In this document: in pieces, positions 985 to 58,206 of the stretch | How the letters are laid out: each line of letters opens with the position of its first letter | How positions within the stretch are numbered: position 1 is the stretch's first letter | NCBI GenBank assembly: GCA_033442325.1 | Contig: JAWQFM010000009.1 | Span: forward strand, 987,729-1,051,728 | Source: Salpingoeca rosetta | Taxonomy: Eukaryota; Protista; Choanoflagellata | DNA length: 64,000 nucleotides | Direction: 5' to 3' | Notes under the pieces: model-generated | The model's input: the letters and a program-made list of their open reading frames with translations, nothing else | Databases searched by the model: none | Told to the model about the DNA's origin: nothing | Program-made: the position numbers and the translations under genes

Positions 985-1054
<70 letters not shown>

Positions 1055-1494
1055 CGCACACACATGCGCACGATGACCACCTGTCATTTCCTGGCGCAGG
1101 GCGTCAGTCTCTGCCTTGACGCGTTGCATCTCCTCCTCCTTCTCCCTGTGCCGCAGGTTTGCCTCGATGTTTGCGCGGTACTGCTTATGCGTGGACACGT
1201 CGGATGAGAGCTGCGACATGTGGCGGTCGAGGTCCTTAATGCGGTCGGAGAGCTCGCGCTGGTCGCGCTGCCGCTCCTCCAACTCCTCCTTGCACTTGGC
1301 AAGCCGCTGCCGCTGCCCAGAGGCAACATACCTGGCCGCGCAGCGTTTGTGTGAGGGCGAGAGAGTGTGAGAGTGTGTGTGAGAGTGTGTGAGAGTGTGT
1401 GTGAGAGAGTGTGTGAGTGGGAGTGGGAGTGCGCATGGGAAATGTTGGGTTGAGCTGGGTTGTGTGCAGCAGGTGATCGAAGCAGGCGTTCGCG

Positions 1495-1586
<92 letters not shown>

Positions 1587-4446
1587 TTGATGTCTGATTC
1601 AATGGCGTCGAGGCGGTTGATGCAGCGCGAGATTTTGTTGACCTCCCGTTGGCTCTTCTCCAACACCTGCTCGCGTTCGTGCTGCAAATCCCGCCGCTCA
1701 CGGTCCGCATCCTCCATCGCCTTCTCGTACTGCTGCTGGTCCGTCCTCAACGCCTGCATACACGCACATGGAGGATACCACGTGCATGTCACGCATACAC
1801 GCACACGTCACTGGTGCAAGTTTCGCTCGTCCCATATCACAACACAGCACATCCACATCCACACACACACACACACACCTTGCGCTGGTCTTGTGTGGCC
1901 GTGAGTTCTTGCGACTGCGCTTGAATCTGCTCGCGCAGGCGCCTGCAGAACAAGATCACAAAGCAAAACGGCAGACCATCTGATGAGAAACTTGCAGAAT
2001 GCTCCAGTGCTTTGTGTGCGACGTGGCATGTGGGTGTTTGTGTTTACGGTGTGGCTGCTTACGCTTGCTGCGCCAATGCCTGATGCACTTTCGCCAGCTC
2101 ATCCTTCCTTGTTGACACGCCCTGCACACGCACGCCACATGTTGCAAGCCAACGTGACTCGGATGAGCTCGTCGCATGCACGCACGCACACACATGCACA
2201 TGCACACACACACGCAAACACACACGCACACACACGCACACACACACTCGGAAAGGGGAATAGAAGCGCAATTGCATATGAGTGGACATGCACGCATGTG
2301 CGCACTTGATATGCACGTGTACGTCAACACCCACCTGCTGCGTTTGCACACATGCACTCTGCAGTTTTCCTCGACGACGCACAACGTCGCTCTCCTCCTG
2401 CAACAGCTCCTCCCTGCAATGTCAGCCGCCAAGTCACGACAACGACATGAAGAGGCGGATGAGGTGACATCTCATTTCAATGCAGCGAGAGAAGAGCACC
2501 CGAGGATTGTGTGCAAGGGTTGTGGCAGCCGAACACAGCGGCGCACACACATGTTATCTCACCGCTTTCGTTGAAGCTTCTGCAGCTCCTGCTCAGCCTC
2601 ATCCAACGTGATGGTGTCGCCTGTGTACATATGTCGCGCGCATGTGTGTTGGGATTTGCAAGGATGGGTGCATCCACATGTTCAGTGTGTGTGTGGGGGG
2701 GCAGGGCACCAAAACAAGTGTGGCGATGTGGAGACTGCCAGATACACACACACACACACACCCGAGGTGAGGCGGGACGTGAGGCTGCTGATCTCCTTGG
2801 TGTAGGTGTTGATGCGCTGCTGTGACGCCTTAAGATCCTTTGCCACATCGCACAGAGCGCGCAGACGCTGGATGGCGTCCTTCGTGTCATCAATGTGGCT
2901 CTCAGTCTGCACACACAAGAAGCATAAGTGGAGCAGCGACGCGTATCGTGTCAACATCGCGTGACCACACCAAGGGCAGCAGCAACAGCCACTCTAATCG
3001 CCACAACCATTACAACCACAGGCACCTTTTCAACAACCACAGGCACCACCACGACCATGACACAATACCTTCTCTTTCTCGGCCTCAAGTTCCTCGATTT
3101 CGTTGTCGAGCGCGGCCAAATCGCCCTCGTGCTCCGACATGCGCTCCTCCTGCCGCTGGAACCGCTTCGCCTCCATCTGAAGCCCCTTCAACCTGAATCA
3201 CGGGCAAGCAAAGAGGCAAGCAGCGGTCAGCACTGGCAACCTGAATGGACGCGTCCGGCGGCACAGCAACCAACCCATGCATGCACACGCAAGCAAGCGC
3301 TGGACTCACTTGTCGACTTTTTGCTGTTGTACCGTCACGCTCTCGGCATCGCCTGAGCTCTCCAACGAGAACCGTTGCATCTTCTCCTCAATCTGTCAAT
3401 GATGGGGGTTAGGAGGGAGTAGGGATGCGACGCAAGAAGAGGGCGAAAGGAGAGGGTGTGTTTATGTGTGTAAGTGTGTGAGTATGTGAGAGTGCGTTTG
3501 AGCGAGTGTGTGTGTGTGTGTGAGTGTGTGCATGTGTGCGCGTGTTTGATGTGACCTGGATGCATGTCAGGTGTGGTTGTGAAAGTGACTGTCCACCACG
3601 CACGTACCAGGCGCAGGCAGTCCTCTGCTTCCTGATCTGAGGCGAAATCACGCTGACAGACAAAGCAGGCGTGCGTCTGTTGAGATTTCTGCTTGATGAC
3701 CCTGTACACCTTTGCCATGGCCGGGCGCAGGTCTTGCATGCTGCGCCACAAAGCGGAAGAACGAGACGCGTGAGGAAACAGAGACGCGTGAGGAAACAGA
3801 GACGCGTGAGGAAACAGAGACGCCAAGGAGAGTAATTTGATACCCATACAACACAGACAAACACACACACACACAGACAAACACACATACACACACATTC
3901 AGCAACCATGGTGTGACCTTCGCATATCGCGCAGGGCGGCCTCTGCTTCCTTGAGAGCGTCGTCCAGCGGTTTTTCTGGGCACTCCTTCGCCAGCCGCTG
4001 CGACCACGCGCTGTGCTCCTGCTGCAACGTTTCAAGAGACTGCTTGATGGCCGACTGACGCGCGTTCTTGTCGGCCAAGTGCTGCACAACAGCATCGCGG
4101 TTGCGGTTGGCGTTGTCCAGGTGTCGCTCCTGCGATCTGTGAGTGTGTGTGTGTGTGGGGGGGGGGATGTGGGTAAGAGTGACAGTGTGTGTAAAGGCGT
4201 AAAGGTGACCGTGTGAGAGTATGTGAGCATGTGAGTGTGGTGGTAAAATGTCAGTTGCAGCAAACACCCAAGCCTAACACATGTGCTCCCGCACACACAC
4301 ACACACACATACCCGTGTTCACATGCACATGCACACATTTCTGTACGTACTGCAGGGCGCCGACAACTGCGGCGTGGTAGCGGTCTGGTGAGAGCTGATC
4401 GCCAGCAGCATCCTCCAGCTCAGACCCGTGCTTCTTCAGACTACCG

Positions 4447-4502
<56 letters not shown>

Positions 4503-4832
4503 TGTGTGCACGTTCATGGAAATGAAAGTGTGGGAGCGCGGTGGTCAGCGGTGACGAGCCAGCGAATACATCCGAATTAGGAGTGAATGGTAGGCAGTAT
4601 CAGAGACACCCAACATGAGCAGGGCAGCAGAACGGTGTGCGCCTGTACACTACTGCAATGAACAAGGGCATGGCTGGTGCCGTCGTAAACAGCACAACGC
4701 ACATCTTGTCGACGCGCTGCTTGCTCTGTTCCATGGCATCCTTCGTTGTCTGGATCTTGCGTTGCAGCTCCTCATCCTGGCGGATCCGGCGCAGGCGCTC
4801 GCTACCAGTGTGAGATGTGTGTATTTGGGTGT

Positions 4833-4907
<75 letters not shown>

Positions 4908-6469
4908 CGAGTGTGAGCAAGAGAATGCGAAGGAAAACACGTAAATGCAGAGGTGGACAAGGTTGCCGTGCATTGAGAACCAAGTCACATCCACAGAGTA
5001 CACACAAAACCACAACACACACACACACACACACGCCACACGCTACACACCACACCACAACACACACACACACACACACACACACCACCATCAACACCAC
5101 ACAACGCACGTTGCCCTTTTCAGCTGTTGTTGGGTGTCTTTCTTCTGCTTTTCGATGTTCTTCTCTGCAATCTCCGCCTCAAACGCCTTGAGCGCGTCGT
5201 CTGCGTGCTTGTGCTCAAGCTCCTGCCCATATGCATGCGTACGTGCGTGTGTTGTGTGTGTGTGGGGGGTGCCACCAGTCCACGGTCAGCTGGCGCACAC
5301 CGCGCACACGCACAAATGAATAGACGACGACGATAAGTAGCGCATGGTACTCATATCATGTGAGTTTGTGTGTGTATGGTCGACGTACGGCTGTGTTGAC
5401 GAGCGCCTCCAGCGACTGCACGTCTGTTGTTTGTGCCGGCGCCTGCTCCAGCTGCTGCGTCAGCGAGCGGATCGTCTTGCGGCACTTGTCCTGTGTGTTG
5501 TGTGAGTGTGCGTGTGAGAGAGAGAGTGTGTGTGTGTGAGTGAGTGAGTGAGTTAGTGAGAGTGAGACAATGTGTGTCAGTCATGCTCCCTCGTGCGTGT
5601 ATATGTGCAGTTGTGCGAACGGAACGTTCAGACGCTGCCGCCACCATTTTGATACCTCCGTCTGCTTGAGATGCTGCAAGCGCGCTTGCAGTTGATTGAA
5701 TTTTGCACGCTTCTGCTCGTGCTTCTCGTCAACACGGCTCTGCTTCTGGTCGTAGCTCGCCTGCACACGCATGCAGCGAAGAGGATCACCTCGGTGAACG
5801 TTTTGATGTGATCACCAAGAGGGTTTTTTTTTGGGGGGGGGGGTGCAGTGGGGTGCAGTGCAACCTTCGGCCACTTGGAGCGAATCTCACGTGCCACGCA
5901 ACCATCGAACACGTGCGCAGGCAGAGTCATAGACACACAGATATACACATACACACACGTACACACACGTACACACACACACACACCACCACCACCACCA
6001 CCACCACCACCACCACACATACACGCACGCACACACACGCACGCACACACGCGCGCACCTTTGTTTCCTTCATGCGGGCCTCGGCGTCCTTGAGCTGTCC
6101 CTGTAGATACTCGAGGAACGCCTCAGGCTCAACCACATCTGTCAACAGGCAGCAAGCAGGCGCACAATCAACTGTATGCAGATGCGCGATGTGCACTGCA
6201 CTGACGTTGAAAACGAAAGCATGCTCACAATCACAGTTGTACTTGCACGCAATCACAGAGGTCACGCATGTACAGACACGCACACACACACACACATACA
6301 CACGCGCGCACCAGCGATGGCGAGCTCTCGACATAGGTCAACGACGAGCTGCTTGCGGTCTTGCAGCTTTCGCTTGTGCTCCTAAAGGCGGCAACACGGC
6401 AGGGGCAACGGCAACGCGTTGGTTTAGCAGCGACCTTGCCAAAACACAAACATGGGCACACAAAAAAGT

Positions 6470-50685: not shown

Positions 50686-53600
50686 TCATATGCATTCGGC
50701 AGGGCAATTGGTGAGGATGATGCTGTCGTAGTTGTTCACGCATGTGGCAGTGAAGTCCTGACAGTCGACGCTGGTGAGATTATTGCTGCCGAAAGCCAGG
50801 TGTCCAAGGAAAACGGTTCCAGTCACGCTGGTAATGCTGCCGAAGCTGATGCTGGTGAGGGCCTCATTTCCGCCCACTGCAATATCGCCGTCCACAGTGC
50901 TGATGGCACCAAAGTCAATGGTGGTGAGGGCAGGCTGTGAAGTGATGCGGAAGCTGCCGGTACGGGTTAGAGCGGGGAAGCTGAGAGAAGTAAGCGCATT
51001 GTTTTGCACGACTTCGACAGCGCCAGATGTATTGGTGAGACTGTTCAAAGTAATGCCAGCAAGTTTGGCGTTCCTGGCAATGAGTATCGTGTTGTCGACG
51101 GCCTCGACGGCACCAAAATCGACACTAGTCAGAACGCTGTTGTCCATGACGCTAACAGCGCCCACAGTGGTGAGAACGCTGCCAAAGTCGATTGACGGGA
51201 GGCCACTGTTGTCGCTGAACTGCAAGAAAGTTTGTACCGTGGTGATGTTGCCAAAGTCGACACTGGTCAGCGCACCGTTGGCTCTAATTTCGACGAAGGC
51301 ACCCACAGTCGTGATGCTATCAAAGTCGACGCTGGTCAGCGCACCGTTGCCGCTAAATTCGATGGAGGTACCCACAGCCGTGATGCTGCCAAAGTCGACG
51401 CTGGTCAGCGCATCGTTGTCCTTGAAAGCGACACCACCCTCGACATTTGTGATCAGACCAAAGTTGATACTGGGCAGTGCATTGTTGTTGCCAAAGAGGA
51501 TGTTATCGAAGGTGCGGATGTTGCGAAAGTTGATGCTGGTCAGCGCCCTGTTATCGGTGAACTTGGCCTCGTCAATGCTGGTCAGTGAGCTGCCAAAGTC
51601 CACCGACGAAAGGGCGACATGGTTGTCGAAAGTGATGGATTCGAGGCTGGTGATGCTGCCAAAGTCGACACTGGTCAGCGCATTGTTGATGTCGAACTTA
51701 ATGTGTGTGCGGACAAAAGTAATGCTGCTAAAGTTGACGCTGCTCAGCGCATCGTTGTCGAGAAACTCGACGTAGTCACCCACATTGGTGAGGGCGCTGC
51801 CAAAGTCAATCAGTGGAAGGGCGTCATTGTCCTCGAACTTGGCATAAGTGGTGATTTGGGTGATGACGCCAAAGTCGACGCTGGTCAGTTTGTTGTTGTC
51901 GTGGAAGAGCACGTGTTGATCCACGAGGTTAATGTTAGCAAAGTCCAAGCTGGTCAGCGCATAGTTTGTGTCTATCTGAACGTGCCCTCCGACAGTGGTC
52001 ACGCTGCCAAAGTCAATGTCAGTTAGGGCAACGTTGTTTTTGAGCTCAATGCAGCCAGCCACGTTGGTGACGGCGCTAAAGTCGAAGCTGGTCAGGGCGT
52101 CATGGAAGTCCACGAAGACGCACCCGCTAAGCTCAGCGAGGATGTCGCCGAGGTTGATGCGGGGGAGAGCGTCGTTGTCGTGGAATTTCAAGTCGTTGCC
52201 GACCTCCTTGATGCCGCCAAAGTCGATGCTCGTCAGGTTTTGATTCGAGGACAAAACCGCGCTACCCACATAAGTGAGAGCGTTGCCAAAGCTGATGCTG
52301 GGCAGGGCATCGTTGGCTGCGAAAGTCACAGTACCCTTCACACTGACAATGTCGCTAAAGTCAACGCTGGTCAGGTCGGCATTTGAAAGGAAGTTGAGGT
52401 TACCCTCGACGCGAATGATTGCGCCAAGGCTGACGCTGGGGAGGACGGCGTTGTTGCTGAAGGTAATGTCCCCAGTCACATTGGTGATTGCGCCAAAGTC
52501 GACGCTGTCAAGCTTGTTGTTGAAGAGAAAGGAGATGTACACAGGCACAACGGTAAGGGTGTTACCAAAGTCAACACTGACAAGGCGTGAGTTCCTGACA
52601 AACTCAATGTATCCGCCCAGGTTGATGAGGATGTCGCCGAAGCCCATGTGCGGGAGGGCGTCATTGTCGTCAAATTTGATGTGTTGGGCAATGCTGGTGA
52701 TGCTGGCAAAATCAACACTGGTCAGGTTGTCGTTGTTGTAGAATCGGACATAACCGCCAATGGTCGTGACACCGCCGAAGTCTGCGCTTGTCAGGGCAGC
52801 GTTTGTCTCGATGTTCACAAAGCCACCCACAGCAGTGAGCGTGCCCCCAAAGTTCACAAGTGGGAGAGCGCTATTCATCACAGCGGTGATGGATGCGGTC
52901 ACATTGGTGATACTGCCAAAGTCAATGCTGGCCAAGGCACTGTTTTGAAGGAAACGGATGTCGCCGTGGACCTTAGTGATGCTGCCGAAATCAATGCTGG
53001 TCAGGTTGTCGTTGGTCCGAAACTCAATTGTACCCGCTCTGGTGAGAGTGCCCCCGAAGTCCATCAATGGGAGGCCGTCATTGTCTAAGAAGTAGACGTG
53101 TCTGTCAACGTTTGTCACACTGCCAAAGTCGACGCTGGTCAGGGCGTCGTTGTCGTCGAAGAGGACGTAGTCAGCACTGGTCACGCTGCCAAAGTCGACG
53201 CTGGTCAGGGCATCGTTACTGCGAAGCTCAATGTAGCCACCAAGGTACTTGAAAGTCTCGCCAAAGCTGACCAATGGAAGGCCATCGTTGTCATCAAACT
53301 TGATGTAGCCACCCACGTTGGTGATGCTGCCAAAGTCAACACTGGTCAGCGCATCATTGTCGTAGAAGAAGACATGGCCAGTGACCAGGGAAATGTCACC
53401 AAAATAGACGCTGGGCAGGGCATCGTTGGTGTCAAACTGTATGTAATCACCCACTTGAGTGGTGCTGCCAAAGTCAATGCTGGTGAGGTCGTCGTTGTCG
53501 TTGAAGTAGATGTGACCATGAACGTCGGCGATATTGCCGAAGCTCACGCTGGCCAATGCACCGTTGCTGCTGAACTCAACATAGTCGTCCACAAGCGTGA

Positions 53601-56600
53601 ACACATTGCCAAAGTCAATTAGTGGAAGGCCGTCGTTGTCATCAAACTTGACGTGGCCACCGACACTGGTGACGCCGCCAAAGCCAACGTTGGTCAGCGC
53701 ATCGTTGTCGTCGAAAAAGATGTAACCGCCCACCTGGGCAATGCTGCCAAAGTCAACGCTGGTCAGCGCGCTGTTAGCGCTGAACTCGACGTAGTCACTC
53801 ACATCGGTGAGGATGCTGCCAAAGTCAATGACTGGAAGGGCACCATTCGCTTCAAAGTCAATGCAGCCACCAACGCTGGTGATGACACCGAAGTCGATGC
53901 TGGCCAGCATGTTGTTGGACGAGATTGAGATGCACCCACCAACGCTGGTAAGGACCTTGCCGAAGTCGATGCGGGGGAGGGCATCGTTGTTGTCGAATGC
54001 GACGTATTCGACAACGTTCTCGATACTGCCAAAGTTGACACTCGTCAGGTTGCTGTTGGAGAAGAAGCTGATGCACCCGTCGACGGCTGTGATGCCGCCC
54101 CCAAAGTCAAACACCTCCAGCACATCATTATCGATCAGTGTCACGTTGTCCACCACACGCCCACTCTCGACACCAAACGGATCACCGGCCCACTTCACTG
54201 CGCCACCAACGTCGTGCAGTGACCCAAGGTCAATGACACGCATTGGGTTGCTGCTCATGTCCAGGTCGCCGCCGACAGCTGACAGCAGACCGAGGTGGAC
54301 GGAAGAAATGCTGTTGTCGCTAATGTCGATGTCACCAGTGACATTTTTCACGACGCCAAAGTTGACGCTAATCAGGTTGCTGACGGAGGTGAAGCTGATG
54401 CACCCGTCGACGGCTGTGATGCCGCCCCCAAAGTCAAACACCTCCAGCACATCATCATCGATCAGTGTCACGTTGTCCACCACACGCCCACTCTCGATAC
54501 CAAACGGATCACCAGCCCACTTCACCGCACCACCGACATCCTGCAGTGACCCAAGGTCAATGACACGCATTGGGTTGCTGCTCATGTCCAGGTCCCCACC
54601 AATCGCTGTCAGCGCACCGAGGCGAAGGGATGAGATGCTGTTGCCACTGACGTCAACATAACTGCCGACCGTCGCCACGATGCCAAAATTGACGCTCGTG
54701 AGGTTGCTGTTGGAGGTGAGGTTGATGCACTCATCCACTCTGCTGATGCCGCCCAAGTTGACGCTAATCAGGTTGCTGACGGAGGTGAAGCTGATGCACC
54801 CGTCGACGGCTGTGATGCCGCCCCCAAAGTCAAACACCTCCAGCACATCATCATCGATCAGTGTCACGTTGTCCACCACACGCCCACTCTCGATACCAAA
54901 CGGATCACCAGCCCACTTCACCGCACCACCGACATCCTGCAGTGACCCAAGGTCAATGACACGCATTGGGTTGCTGCTCATGTCAACGCTGCCGCCAACA
55001 GTTGTCACAGCGCCAAAGTCGATACTCGTCAGGTTGCTGTTGCTCATGTCGAGGTCACCACCAACGGCTGAGAGCAGGCCAAGGCGAAGGGAAGAAATGC
55101 TGTTGTCGCTCATGTCAACGCTGCCGCCAACAGTTGTCACAGCGCCAAAGTCGATACTCGTCAGGTTGCTGTTGCTCATGTCGAGGTCGCCACCAACGGC
55201 TGAGAGTAGGCCAAGGAGAAGGGAAGAAATGCTGTTGTCGCTCATGTCAATGTTGCCGGTGACATTTGTCACAACACCAAAGTCAATGCTGGTGATGCTG
55301 TTGTTGCTCATGTCGAGGTCGCCATCAACGTTTGCCAGCAAGCCGAAGTTGATCGCAGTAATGCTGTTGTCGTTCAGGGCCACGGTCCCACCGACGGACG
55401 TCAAGTTTCCAAAGTCAACTGACACCAGCGAGCCTCCGCTGCCAACGACATCGCCGCCAACATGCACAACTGATCCAAACTGAAGCGAGGAAAGGGAGGT
55501 GTTGAGGGATACGGATCCTGCGACGCTGTTCAAGGCGTAAAACTCATCGCAGCAGCAGTTCACGACGGAGGCAGCGGTGCAAAATGCATTTGCGACGAAT
55601 TCAAGCCGGGAGACGGGGTTCGCACAGTCCAGGGTGACGTTGCTCACGCAAGACTTGCTCTTGCTGCTGGACGCGATTGTTAGCACGGAGACTGGTACGG
55701 CTACACTGGCGATGACAGCGATCAACAGCATCGCCAAGAGAGTCTTGCTCCTCCAGCGCGTCCCGTGCTTCAATTCAACCGTGCCACCAGTCTCCAGCCC
55801 AAACGACTTGAGGTCAGCGGGTGCATGCTTCATCTTCAGCGACGACGAGGAAGATGACCCCGTGTTGAAAGTGTTGTTGCTGGTTAGCTTGTTGTGCGTT
55901 GGCTGCTGAACTTGCGGCTCTTTCTGCGTGGTAGCAAGCGTAGCGCTGCTCAGTGCTGTCTCGGTGACTGGGTCATGTGCAACGGCAACGACGGGAAGCG
56001 TGGCCTTCTTCTGCTGGCCAGCTGGCGTGACTTGCTCGATTCTGCACTGCAGCTGAGCAGAATGTGATATGTACGCGTGTGGTATGTGCGTGGAGCTGGG
56101 GTCAGGAATCGAGCTTTTATGAACGCATCAGGTAGTCAGGTAGGTAAAGTGGTGGGGCAATATGTGGGGATGGTGTCGCATCAGCAGCAATTGCAGCGGC
56201 AAATACATGTGGCGTACCGTGTGTGACATTGTCTCTTGGTTGGCTGAAAGATGGTCAAGCGCAGTCTCAAGGCTGTCCGGCTGCAGCAGCAGCTTCTTGT
56301 CGAGAACATAGAGCCCAGTATCATCCTGGGATAGTGCATGGTGCTCGACCTTGTCTTCCCCAATAACCTGGGAGTGGAAAGATGGACATGTGTCAAGGAG
56401 AGGGTCATCATCACTGGCGTTGTGAATACTTCGGTGGGTGGCTTCTTGACACACGCCGCAACACAGTTACATACAAGCGGAGGTGCTCAGGCACAGCAGC
56501 AAACCAAACAAAGGCACCACCCATTCCAAACATACAAGGCTGATGGCGAGCTGGTTGTCGGATTTGGTTCGCCGCACCACGTAGTCCCCGGGTGCGCAGC

Positions 56601-57073
56601 CGGCACGGTCGAGAAGGAGCACAGCGGCTTCTGCTTTGCCCATCTTGTGGATATTGGGGGGCGGCAGTCCGCCATCGCCATGGTGATGCAGCTGCAGCTG
56701 GGGCGCAGTTGTTGTTGGCGTCTCAGGTACCGTCTACCAGGGTTGATGCGGTGACAAAAAAAGGCAAGGTCCAGTGAGGGATCGTTGTTGCTACAACTCA
56801 GACAGAGGCAAGGTGTCACTCGACCAAACACGAAATACAGCAGAGAGAACCAAAACATATCCCCAACAAGAGCAACAACGAGAAAGAACTGGGGGGGGGG
56901 GATCCAGATACAGGACGCACACACGCACAGACACACAGAGGGAGGCACACGCACTAGGGGGATCCAGATACAGGCACGCACACAGACACAGACACACAGA
57001 GGGAGGCACACACGCACGCACACACACACACGCACACACACACACGCACACACACACACGCACGCACACACAC

Positions 57074-57114
<41 letters not shown>

Positions 57115-57559
57115 GCCCTTGGTTGTCCTGAACCTCGAGTTTGGCGATGATCTTGTCAATCAAGTCGACAGGCACATCCGCGCTCTCATCGGGGTTCCAC
57201 GAAAAGTGAACGACATGGTCGGTGAGTTGGGCCTGAGCCTTCGGCTCCTCGAATTGGTCACACATCTTCACGAGGAAGAACCGCTTGTCGTGGTGCAAGA
57301 TGTACTGCAGTTCCTCGTGGGTGCTGAAGTCGCTGTCTGTCTGCTCCCCATACGTCCGTGTGCCAAGCAAAACGGCCATCCGGCAGCCATGCAAGGATCG
57401 AACCACCGTCCTGGCCGCATCTTCTCCAGATGAAGCATCGCCGATGAATACGTCAATGCCACGGGCCTTGAGGGCTTCTTCCAGAACCTTGCCAGCGTGC
57501 TGCGCCTCGCTGAAGCAAAGCGAGATGAAGACATCAACGCCCTGCGATGGCATGGTCAT
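50686..57559 (-). CDS. Putative type II membrane receptor TIR-SH2-linker-TM-(L-domain/LRR-like solenoid), about 2050 aa; exons 57559-57134 (or -57110), 56733-56536, 56367-56218, 56052-50686
   Basis: All junctions are phase-0 GT..AG and continue in frame into the 1715-aa ORF (56052-55833 = 73 codons, no stop). TIR: [35 protein letters not shown]2: [54 protein letters not shown]: [29 protein letters not shown]. About 22-23 aa repeats of the type [23 protein letters not shown] follow. Confidence 0.8.
54064..54983. repeat. Three near-identical ~200-bp intragenic copies (about 54064-54267, 54359-54595, 54756-54983)
   Basis: DNA encoding [13 protein letters not shown](Q/H)[14 protein letters not shown](I/V)[13 protein letters not shown](D/N)[21 protein letters not shown] occurs three times with few substitutions. 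Confidence 0.9.
54976..55250. repeat. 132-bp (44-codon) tandem duplication within the ectodomain exon
   Basis: gctcatgtcaacgctgccgccaacagttgtcacagcgcc... starts at 54976 and again at 55108. A third partial copy begins near 55240. Confidence 0.9.
56218..56733 (-). other. SH2 domain split over two exons (56733-56536, 56367-56218)
   Basis: Manual translation. The FLVR-equivalent GDYVVRR keeps its Arg at 56574-56572. alphaA is KAEAAVLL, betaD is VEHHAL and alphaB is SLETALDHL. Confidence 0.75.
57134..57559 (-). other. TIR (TIR_2-like) domain exon
   Basis: betaA DVFIS, alpha[14 protein letters not shown], beta[11 protein letters not shown] and alpha[10 protein letters not shown]. The GAG-GAA Glu codons lie at 57316-57311. 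Confidence 0.82.
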
Positions 57560-58206
57560 AGTGGTGGTGGTGGTGTGGGACGGAAATGAACGATTACCCC
57601 TAGGGGATGGATGAAGGAAACAGCGCGGGAAAGGGGAAAATAAGGGATACATTTCGAGGGGTGAAACAATTTGTCTCGAAAAGATGGGTAGGCGTTGATG
57701 GGAACAGCGTTACAGTTTGTTGCATATTCTTTATTTGAGGGAAATAGCTTGAGGTGTTGAGAACGGACGTTTCATCAGTGCATGTAAGCTTGACGATCGG
57801 GTCCTCGTCAGAAAGGCCATAAACTTGAGTGAGGAGGGAAATAGTTTGAGGAGTTCAAAACAACTTTTCTCAACGTGGTGCCACATGCAATCAGCACCAC
57901 GCTTCTGTCATGTTAACCAATTTTCGGCCTGGGCAGATGAGAGTCCCAGATTGCATAGGTGCACATCCAGCGTTTCGGCGGATTTCATTCATGATGTCTC
58001 ATGATGTGATCGAGGGCGATGTCTGCTGGCCACGGCAAGTGAGAAATCCACCGGCCCATTGTATCGTATCCGTTTAGTCAGTGAAATAAACAGCTGCGCA
58101 ATAAACATGACCGACCGTGGTCGCATGCATCGAACAAACTTCAGATGCTGTTGATGTGTCGAATAACATAATGTAACAACATCCGACAGGGCAGTTGCAC
58201 ATGAAT

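Follow-up and report, generated by a model that had tools for sequence, protein, structure and literature searches.

A predicted choanoflagellate receptor with a TIR domain that retains the catalytic-position glutamate and carries cysteine at a conserved arginine site

We analyzed a stretch of 64,000 nucleotides of genomic DNA from the choanoflagellate Salpingoeca rosetta (hereafter the window) and describe a minus-strand gene whose first exon encodes a TIR domain. The product is predicted to be a single-pass type II receptor of inverted domain order, with the TIR domain in the cytosol. This domain retains a glutamate (Glu83) at the position used for catalysis by TIR domains that cleave nicotinamide adenine dinucleotide (NAD+), and it carries a cysteine (Cys15) where its relatives and the enzyme SARM1 have an arginine. 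The explanation that we favor, to which we give somewhat less than an even chance, is that the domain belongs to an enzyme lineage and serves in the window copy mainly as a clustering-driven assembly module, its contact to the phosphates of NAD being damaged.

The TIR domain and its receptor context

The exon runs from 57559 to 57134 on the minus strand, begins with ATG and has 142 open codons, with the fold spanning residues 10-141. With the Pfam TIR_2 model it scores 29.3 bits (E = 1.3e-6), narrowly above the cut-off of 28. A search of the PDB with this single sequence found no TIR domain, and solved TIR structures were reached by family profiles only: a profile of the paralogues matches the PDB TIR domains of Roq1, RPV1/RUN1, SARM1 and bacterial PdTIR.

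An AlphaFold model made on the paralogue-profile alignment has a mean predicted local distance difference test score (pLDDT) of 89.3 and a predicted template modeling score (pTM) of 0.85. The modeled elements follow the canonical TIR order (bA 10-13, aA 16-32, bB 37-39, aB 48-58, bC 61-66, aC 80-89, bD 94-98, aD 106-111, bE 117-120 and aE 131-141). They would form five beta-alpha units in a flavodoxin-like fold, which matches solved TIR structures. In a Foldseek search with this model, SARM1 or TIR-1 TIR domains fill the top 28 places (identity 21-26%, best E = 4.5e-6), and TIR domains of plants and bacteria come after them. Structure matches obtained with VIA include the SARM1 and RUN1 domains, and plant enzymatic TIR domains are among the top ones. 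A search of a language-model atlas returned generic bacterial TIR_2 and ThsB clusters only.

An earlier note on this DNA had read the domain as part of a receptor, and the transcript data bear this out. Three GT-AG introns are spliced out of a 1,675-nt RNA contig from run X4, which joins all four exons in frame (57628-57134, 56733-56536, 56367-56218 and 56052 onward). The TIR exon is thereby connected to an SH2-like region, a transmembrane helix and a leucine-rich repeat (LRR) ectodomain. Raw stranded RNA-seq reads from run X18 are confined to the exons, and one of them crosses the first joint; the mapping of RNA reads left out the repeat at 56969-57121. Since one RNA contig holds all three splice joints in frame, two separate genes, one for a TIR-SH2 adaptor and one for an LRR receptor, are ruled out.

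The predicted product has 2,046 residues (142 + 66 + 50 + 1,788), in the order N-terminal TIR domain, SH2-like region, transmembrane helix and giant BspA-type LRR ectodomain. A hydropathy scan locates the helix at residues 362-386, and the ectodomain lies C-terminal to it. The part after the helix contains 23 N-glycosylation sequons and 18 cysteines, and its LRR region matches Pfam LRR_5 at 2.5e-32. A type II topology with a cytosolic TIR domain is predicted because the protein has no signal peptide and the flank of the helix on the TIR side is rich in lysine and arginine. For the SH2-like region, exons were scanned singly: exon 2 matches Pfam SH2 at E = 0.16 and a paralogue exon at E = 0.024. 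Exon 3 alone has no Pfam match, and Pfam scans of P0003 and P0004, paralogue models that are probably full-length, gave no SH2 domain at E <= 0.001.

Glu83 and the catalytic position

The earlier note had also placed a glutamate of helix alphaC at the catalytic position of enzymatic TIR domains, and the alignments agree. When a profile of 129 family sequences is aligned to Roq1 (E = 2.3e-5), the alignment runs through alphaC and sets the family pattern feeL on Roq1 L84-E85-E86-L87. Glu83 corresponds to Roq1 E86 in this alignment; the CC loop is four residues longer than that of Roq1, and posterior probabilities there are only middling. A first profile of 30 paralogues had aligned only up to strand bC, and the catalytic region was reached with the 129-sequence profile alone and for Roq1 alone; profile alignments to SARM1 end at residue ~60. 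The family was also compared by hhalign with canonical TIR_2 domains from the same genome; in both domains used, Glu83 falls on the glutamate of the [WY]CxxE motif, in YCRKEV and in NCKKEF.

In the model Glu83, the second glutamate of HEEL, would lie in the first turn of alphaC. The catalytic glutamate described in the literature sits in the same helix and protrudes from it into the pocket; published work recognizes it by a Calpha position no more than 3 A from that of ThsB E85. By way of Roq1 and the fold, we infer that Glu83 is the equivalent of SARM1 E642. Its equivalence to the catalytic glutamate is thus well supported by alignment and model, at a level below atomic proof. Of the W/C-x-x-E-L motif to which the note had assigned this residue, the Glu-Leu pair aligns, whereas the plant WCxxEL reads FSTxEEL here.

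The glutamate is strongly conserved. It is present in 26 of the 30 paralogues, and among 155 domains taken from the 150 best database proteins the column holds glutamate in 151 (97%) and glutamine in four. The adjacent Glu82 is freely variable in the family, and Leu84, Gly71, Tyr70, Cys100 and Trp121 are nearly invariant among the same 155 domains. At a mean column identity of about 39%, the conservation of Glu83 argues for a functional glutamate. The residue is in itself ordinary, being kept by most non-TLR eukaryotic TIR domains.

Cys15 and other departures from the family

Residue 15 is arginine in 135 of 142 family domains (95%) and in the three closest paralogues, whereas the window copy has cysteine; plant TIR domains likewise have arginine here. 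The position falls on SARM1 R569 at the start of the alignment, where confidence is high and the posterior probability is at the top of its scale (dvfiSlrf against DVFISYRR). In SARM1, R569 and R570 bind the diphosphate of NAD. The window copy has Cys15 and Phe16 at these two sites and therefore lacks the basic residues for this contact. The same substitution occurs in humans as a natural variant, SARM1 R569C, which shows complete loss of NADase function. The TGC codon has no differing letters in runs X4 and X12, and these two independent runs rule out an assembly error. The presence of Cys15 suggests that NAD+ binding is probably crippled in the window copy, in which case Glu83 would be an inherited feature and no proof of activity.

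The tryptophan of the WxxxE motif is also missing. This residue stacks on the substrate, is crucial for cyclization and is important in SARM1 and L6. The window TIR domain has Ser79 at position -4 and Phe78 at position -5 from the glutamate. Most of the family lacks the tryptophan as well, and residues at -5 are mainly phenylalanine (73%), tyrosine (14%) and cysteine (8%). Further departures at strongly conserved sites are Gly40, which is cysteine in 89% of the family, and Arg93, which is proline in 85%.

Within the family, Arg15 and Glu83 tend to be lost together. Both residues are present in 151 domains, Arg15 alone in three, Glu83 alone in 11 and neither in four. The glutamate is lost in 4 of 15 copies that lack the arginine and in 3 of 154 copies that have it (Fisher p = 0.0012, not corrected for phylogeny). 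This pattern fits one shared site.

The TIR subfamily

The 55.4-Mb S. rosetta assembly that contains the window was searched for relatives, and at least 35 exons related to the window TIR domain were found. An exhaustive profile search of 1.84 billion representatives returned 1,178 matches at E <= 0.001, of which 182 reach E <= 1e-30. None of 19 scanned members reaches the Pfam TIR_2 cut-off; they score 19-27 bits or give no match at E <= 0.001. The family is therefore easy to miss and largely invisible to threshold-based annotation, and surveys of TIR domains that depend on annotation may under-count it.

Family TIR domains are fused to ARM repeats, LRR-Roc-COR, WD40, PDZ, helicase and Ras GTPase domains and to receptor ectodomains. 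These fusion partners resemble those of effector TIR domains. We infer that TIR enzymes processing NAD+ gave rise to the subfamily and that most of its members are still such enzymes. Among them hydrolases are more likely than cyclases, because phenylalanine replaces the WxxxE tryptophan.

The three closest paralogues (L054, L053 and L055) have TIR domains that are 55-57% identical to that of the window, and they also look like membrane proteins with an N-terminal TIR domain (Table 1). Other paralogues are built differently. L006-L008 are single-exon proteins in which the TIR domain is joined to ARM repeats (Pfam Arm and ARM_LRRK2), and in L009 and L012 it is followed by about 270 residues that have no Pfam match. 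A gene on a JGI metagenome contig (L056, gene 1001-5284; protein P0067) is intronless and encodes a 1,427-residue NHL / Laminin_G / Ephrin-receptor-like protein with a family TIR domain at its C terminus. Its type I-like arrangement is the opposite of that in the window receptor.

Possible functions of the receptor TIR domain

In the account that we tentatively favor, engagement of the ectodomain would cluster the cytosolic tails and lead to receptor signaling. The clustered TIR domain may nucleate TIR-TIR assemblies, in which its putative partners are further copies of itself or cytosolic paralogues that have the arginine, the TIR-ARM proteins among others. The SH2-like module is a candidate for docking onto phosphotyrosine partners, and NAD+ turnover by the window copy would be weak at most. 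Several observations weigh against this account. The window copy has kept the pocket motif (Y70, G71, T74, F78, S79, T80 and L84) and Gly45 of the BB loop, which points to selection still acting on the pocket. The Arg pair is missing from some active TIR domains, such as TeTIR; Cys15 is therefore not necessarily fatal. At 5 of the 37 conserved positions the window copy departs from the family, and 31% of its relatives deviate as much; overall, the copy does not appear to be unusually degenerate. Lastly, the SH2 assignment lies under the Pfam thresholds.

The earlier note had drawn a different conclusion: that the receptor TIR domain is a competent NAD+-cleaving enzyme, silent as a monomer, and that clustering of the ectodomains by ligand leads to NAD+ depletion or to messengers of the ADP-ribose (ADPR) or cyclic ADP-ribose (cADPR) type. 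We regard this main rival as possible but doubtful. The conserved glutamate in its catalytic position, the intact pocket and the best sequence and Foldseek matches to SARM1 all speak for such an enzyme, as do the plant enzymatic domains among the top VIA matches. Oligomerization generally activates TIR enzymes, and production of cADPR has been reported for another S. rosetta TIR domain and for the TIR domain of human TLR4. The TLR4 report also means that the note's contrast between enzymatic TIR domains and the scaffold domains of Toll-like receptors (TLRs) is under revision. However, the cysteine corresponds to an NADase-dead variant of SARM1, and the absent tryptophan is needed for cyclization and for SARM1 activity. 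The glutamate, which is a part of the claim that stands, is necessary but not sufficient: among glutamate-bearing TIR domains screened as isolated domains, product was obtained from 12 of the 61 animal domains and from 4 of the 29 protist ones (14-20%) (Hurieva 2026), and Dictyostelium TirB and TirD are inactive despite their glutamate. The S. rosetta domain that was assayed for cADPR belongs to another subfamily.

A fuller version of the enzymatic proposal would have ligand-driven clustering of the BspA-type ectodomain switch on a SARM1-like N-terminal TIR domain, which would convert NAD+ into a second messenger, with the SH2 module coupling the receptor to phosphotyrosine signaling. This more specific scenario seems unlikely to us. 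If a SARM1-like TIR domain on a receptor were switched by ligand in this way, catalysis by receptor-coupled TIR domains would be older than the scaffolding seen in animal TLRs, which may have arisen from it. It is improbable that the whole subfamily is non-enzymatic, with Glu83, Arg15 and a KMC motif kept for folding or for an interface to other TIR domains or partners in an adaptor or scaffold role. The scaffold-type TIR domains of TLRs and of the interleukin-1 receptor (IL-1R) have mostly lost the glutamate that this diverse family keeps, Arg15 and Glu83 match two active-site residues of SARM1 and tend to vanish together, and the Roc-COR, WD40 and ARM partners resemble those of effector TIR domains. 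It is very unlikely that the glutamate acts on some other substrate in place of NAD+, whether in converting nucleic acid to 2',3'-cyclic nucleotide monophosphates (2',3'-cNMP), in base exchange or in ADP-ribosyl transfer. A second, nucleic-acid-directed activity has been reported for plant TIR domains, SARM1 is described as having base-exchange and transferase activities, and the loss of the diphosphate-binding arginine could shift substrate preference; nevertheless, this proposal is pure extrapolation, and nothing specific in the window sequence points to it.

TIR domains signal in two modes, as NAD+-consuming enzymes in bacteria, plants and SARM1 or as scaffolds in classical animal TLRs, and choanoflagellates sit where both can be compared. 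The window gene puts an enzyme-lineage TIR domain directly on a surface receptor. Set beside its Arg-bearing sister receptors at G000:C4:552871-553287 and C14:1321113-1321532, it offers a natural comparison, both on whether clustering of a receptor can control catalysis by its TIR domain and on which residues other than the glutamate are decisive. A caution also follows, in that the glutamate alone predicts activity poorly.

Gene structure

Features of the gene and of its closest paralogues are listed in Table 1. An in-frame ATG at 57650-57652 precedes the TIR start by 31 codons and lies just past the 5' end of the RNA contig (57628). If the transcript begins further upstream, then the protein would gain a short N-terminal extension. 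In intron 1, a long (CA)n microsatellite occupies about 57000-57113, and a stretch of ~60 nt is duplicated in tandem, with copies that begin GGATCCAGATACAGG at 56900 and 56960. An exact look-up of the 1,715-residue open reading frame among annotated proteins found no record. The ectodomain frame at 50686-55600 is overlapped by many antisense and off-frame open reading frames and has spurious Pfam matches (DUF2292 and CobW_C_DAAF9), which are artefacts of the ~24-residue ectodomain repeats.

Table 1. Coordinates of the receptor gene in the window and of its three closest paralogues
Feature	Coordinates	Strand	Evidence or content
Exon 1, N-terminal TIR domain (predicted cytosolic), 142 residues	57134..57559	-	Open reading frame, Pfam TIR_2, AlphaFold, Foldseek/VIA, RNA contig over 57628-57134
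Cys15 codon TGC (Arg in the family), aligned to SARM1 R569	57515..57517	-	Codon read; profile alignment
End of CC loop and helix alphaC, residues 78-88	57296..57328	-	Translation; helix 80-89 in model
Glu83 codon GAA, catalytic position of NAD-cleaving TIR domains	57311..57313	-	Alignments to Roq1 E86 and to TIR_2 domains of the same genome
Intron 1, 400 nt, GT..AG	56734..57133	-	Joint 56733/57134 in RNA contig (run X4) and in one raw RNA-seq read (X18)
Exon 2, linker and N-terminal half of SH2-like domain	56536..56733	-	RNA contig joints; weak Pfam SH2
Intron 2, 168 nt, GT..AG	56368..56535	-	Joint in RNA contig, run X4
Exon 3, putative C-terminal half of SH2-like domain	56218..56367	-	RNA contig joints
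Intron 3, 165 nt, GT..AG, frame kept	56053..56217	-	Joint in RNA contig, run X4
Exon 4, 103-residue linker, single transmembrane helix, 1,659-residue BspA-type LRR ectodomain and stop	50686..56052	-	Open frame; Pfam LRR_5 2.5e-32; RNA contig over 56052-55300
Sole strongly hydrophobic segment, K/R-rich flank on TIR side	55669..55743	-	Hydropathy scan
Paralogue L054	G000:C4:543200-553199		SH2-like exon and shorter LRR_5-like open reading frame
Paralogue L053	C14:1311500-1321499		Both SH2-like exons and match to linker before transmembrane helix
Paralogue L055	C4:1718000-1727999		TIR straight into open reading frame with transmembrane segment; no SH2 match

Comparison with known systems

A precedent within the species is the TIR domain of UniProt F2UB80, which is reported to produce cADPR (Hurieva 2026 preprint, Table S4) and shows that choanoflagellate TIR domains can be enzymes. 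The translation of a minus-strand locus in the searched genome (L032, G000:C13:1706318-1706632) is identical to a fragment of F2UB80 from S. rosetta ATCC 50818 over about 190 residues. Like the window TIR domain, this domain keeps the catalytic glutamate. In contrast, it belongs to another subfamily, has a DNVLLEW motif and stands at the C terminus of a 1,352-residue protein; a genome search at E <= 0.01 did not place it among the paralogues of the window domain. TirB and TirD of Dictyostelium are also eukaryotic TIR domains that keep the putative catalytic glutamate. They show no NADase activity in vitro, and the toxicity of TirD is independent of the glutamate. These proteins are thus a precedent for a glutamate that is kept without enzyme activity.

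SARM1 and TIR-1 have an ARM-SAM-SAM-TIR architecture. The window receptor lacks that context and carries its TIR domain at the N terminus of a membrane receptor, so that a SARM1 orthologue is ruled out on architecture. At the sites of SARM1 R569, R570 and W638, it has cysteine, phenylalanine and no tryptophan equivalent. Plant TNL proteins (Roq1, RUN1/RPV1 and L6) have an NB-ARC switch, whereas the window protein has none and is instead predicted to span the membrane, with its sensor outside the cell. The CC loop and the motif around the glutamate differ from those of plant TNL TIR domains as described above.

Animal TLRs share with the window protein an LRR-type ectodomain, one transmembrane helix and a cytosolic TIR domain. 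However, TLRs have a signal peptide, an N-terminal ectodomain and a C-terminal TIR domain of the TLR clade, whereas the window receptor is predicted to be inverted and of type II, with a TIR domain of the TIR_2/SARM1-like kind. Its BspA/LRR_5 repeats and the SH2-like module between the TIR domain and the membrane also set it apart, and a TLR is ruled out on architecture. MyD88 is absent from choanoflagellates, and the reported production of cADPR by human TLR4 is a precedent for catalysis by a receptor-borne TIR domain. Combinations of TIR and SH2 domains in choanoflagellates were noted in 2018. What is unusual here is the inverted, SH2-containing receptor context together with a natural change from arginine to cysteine.
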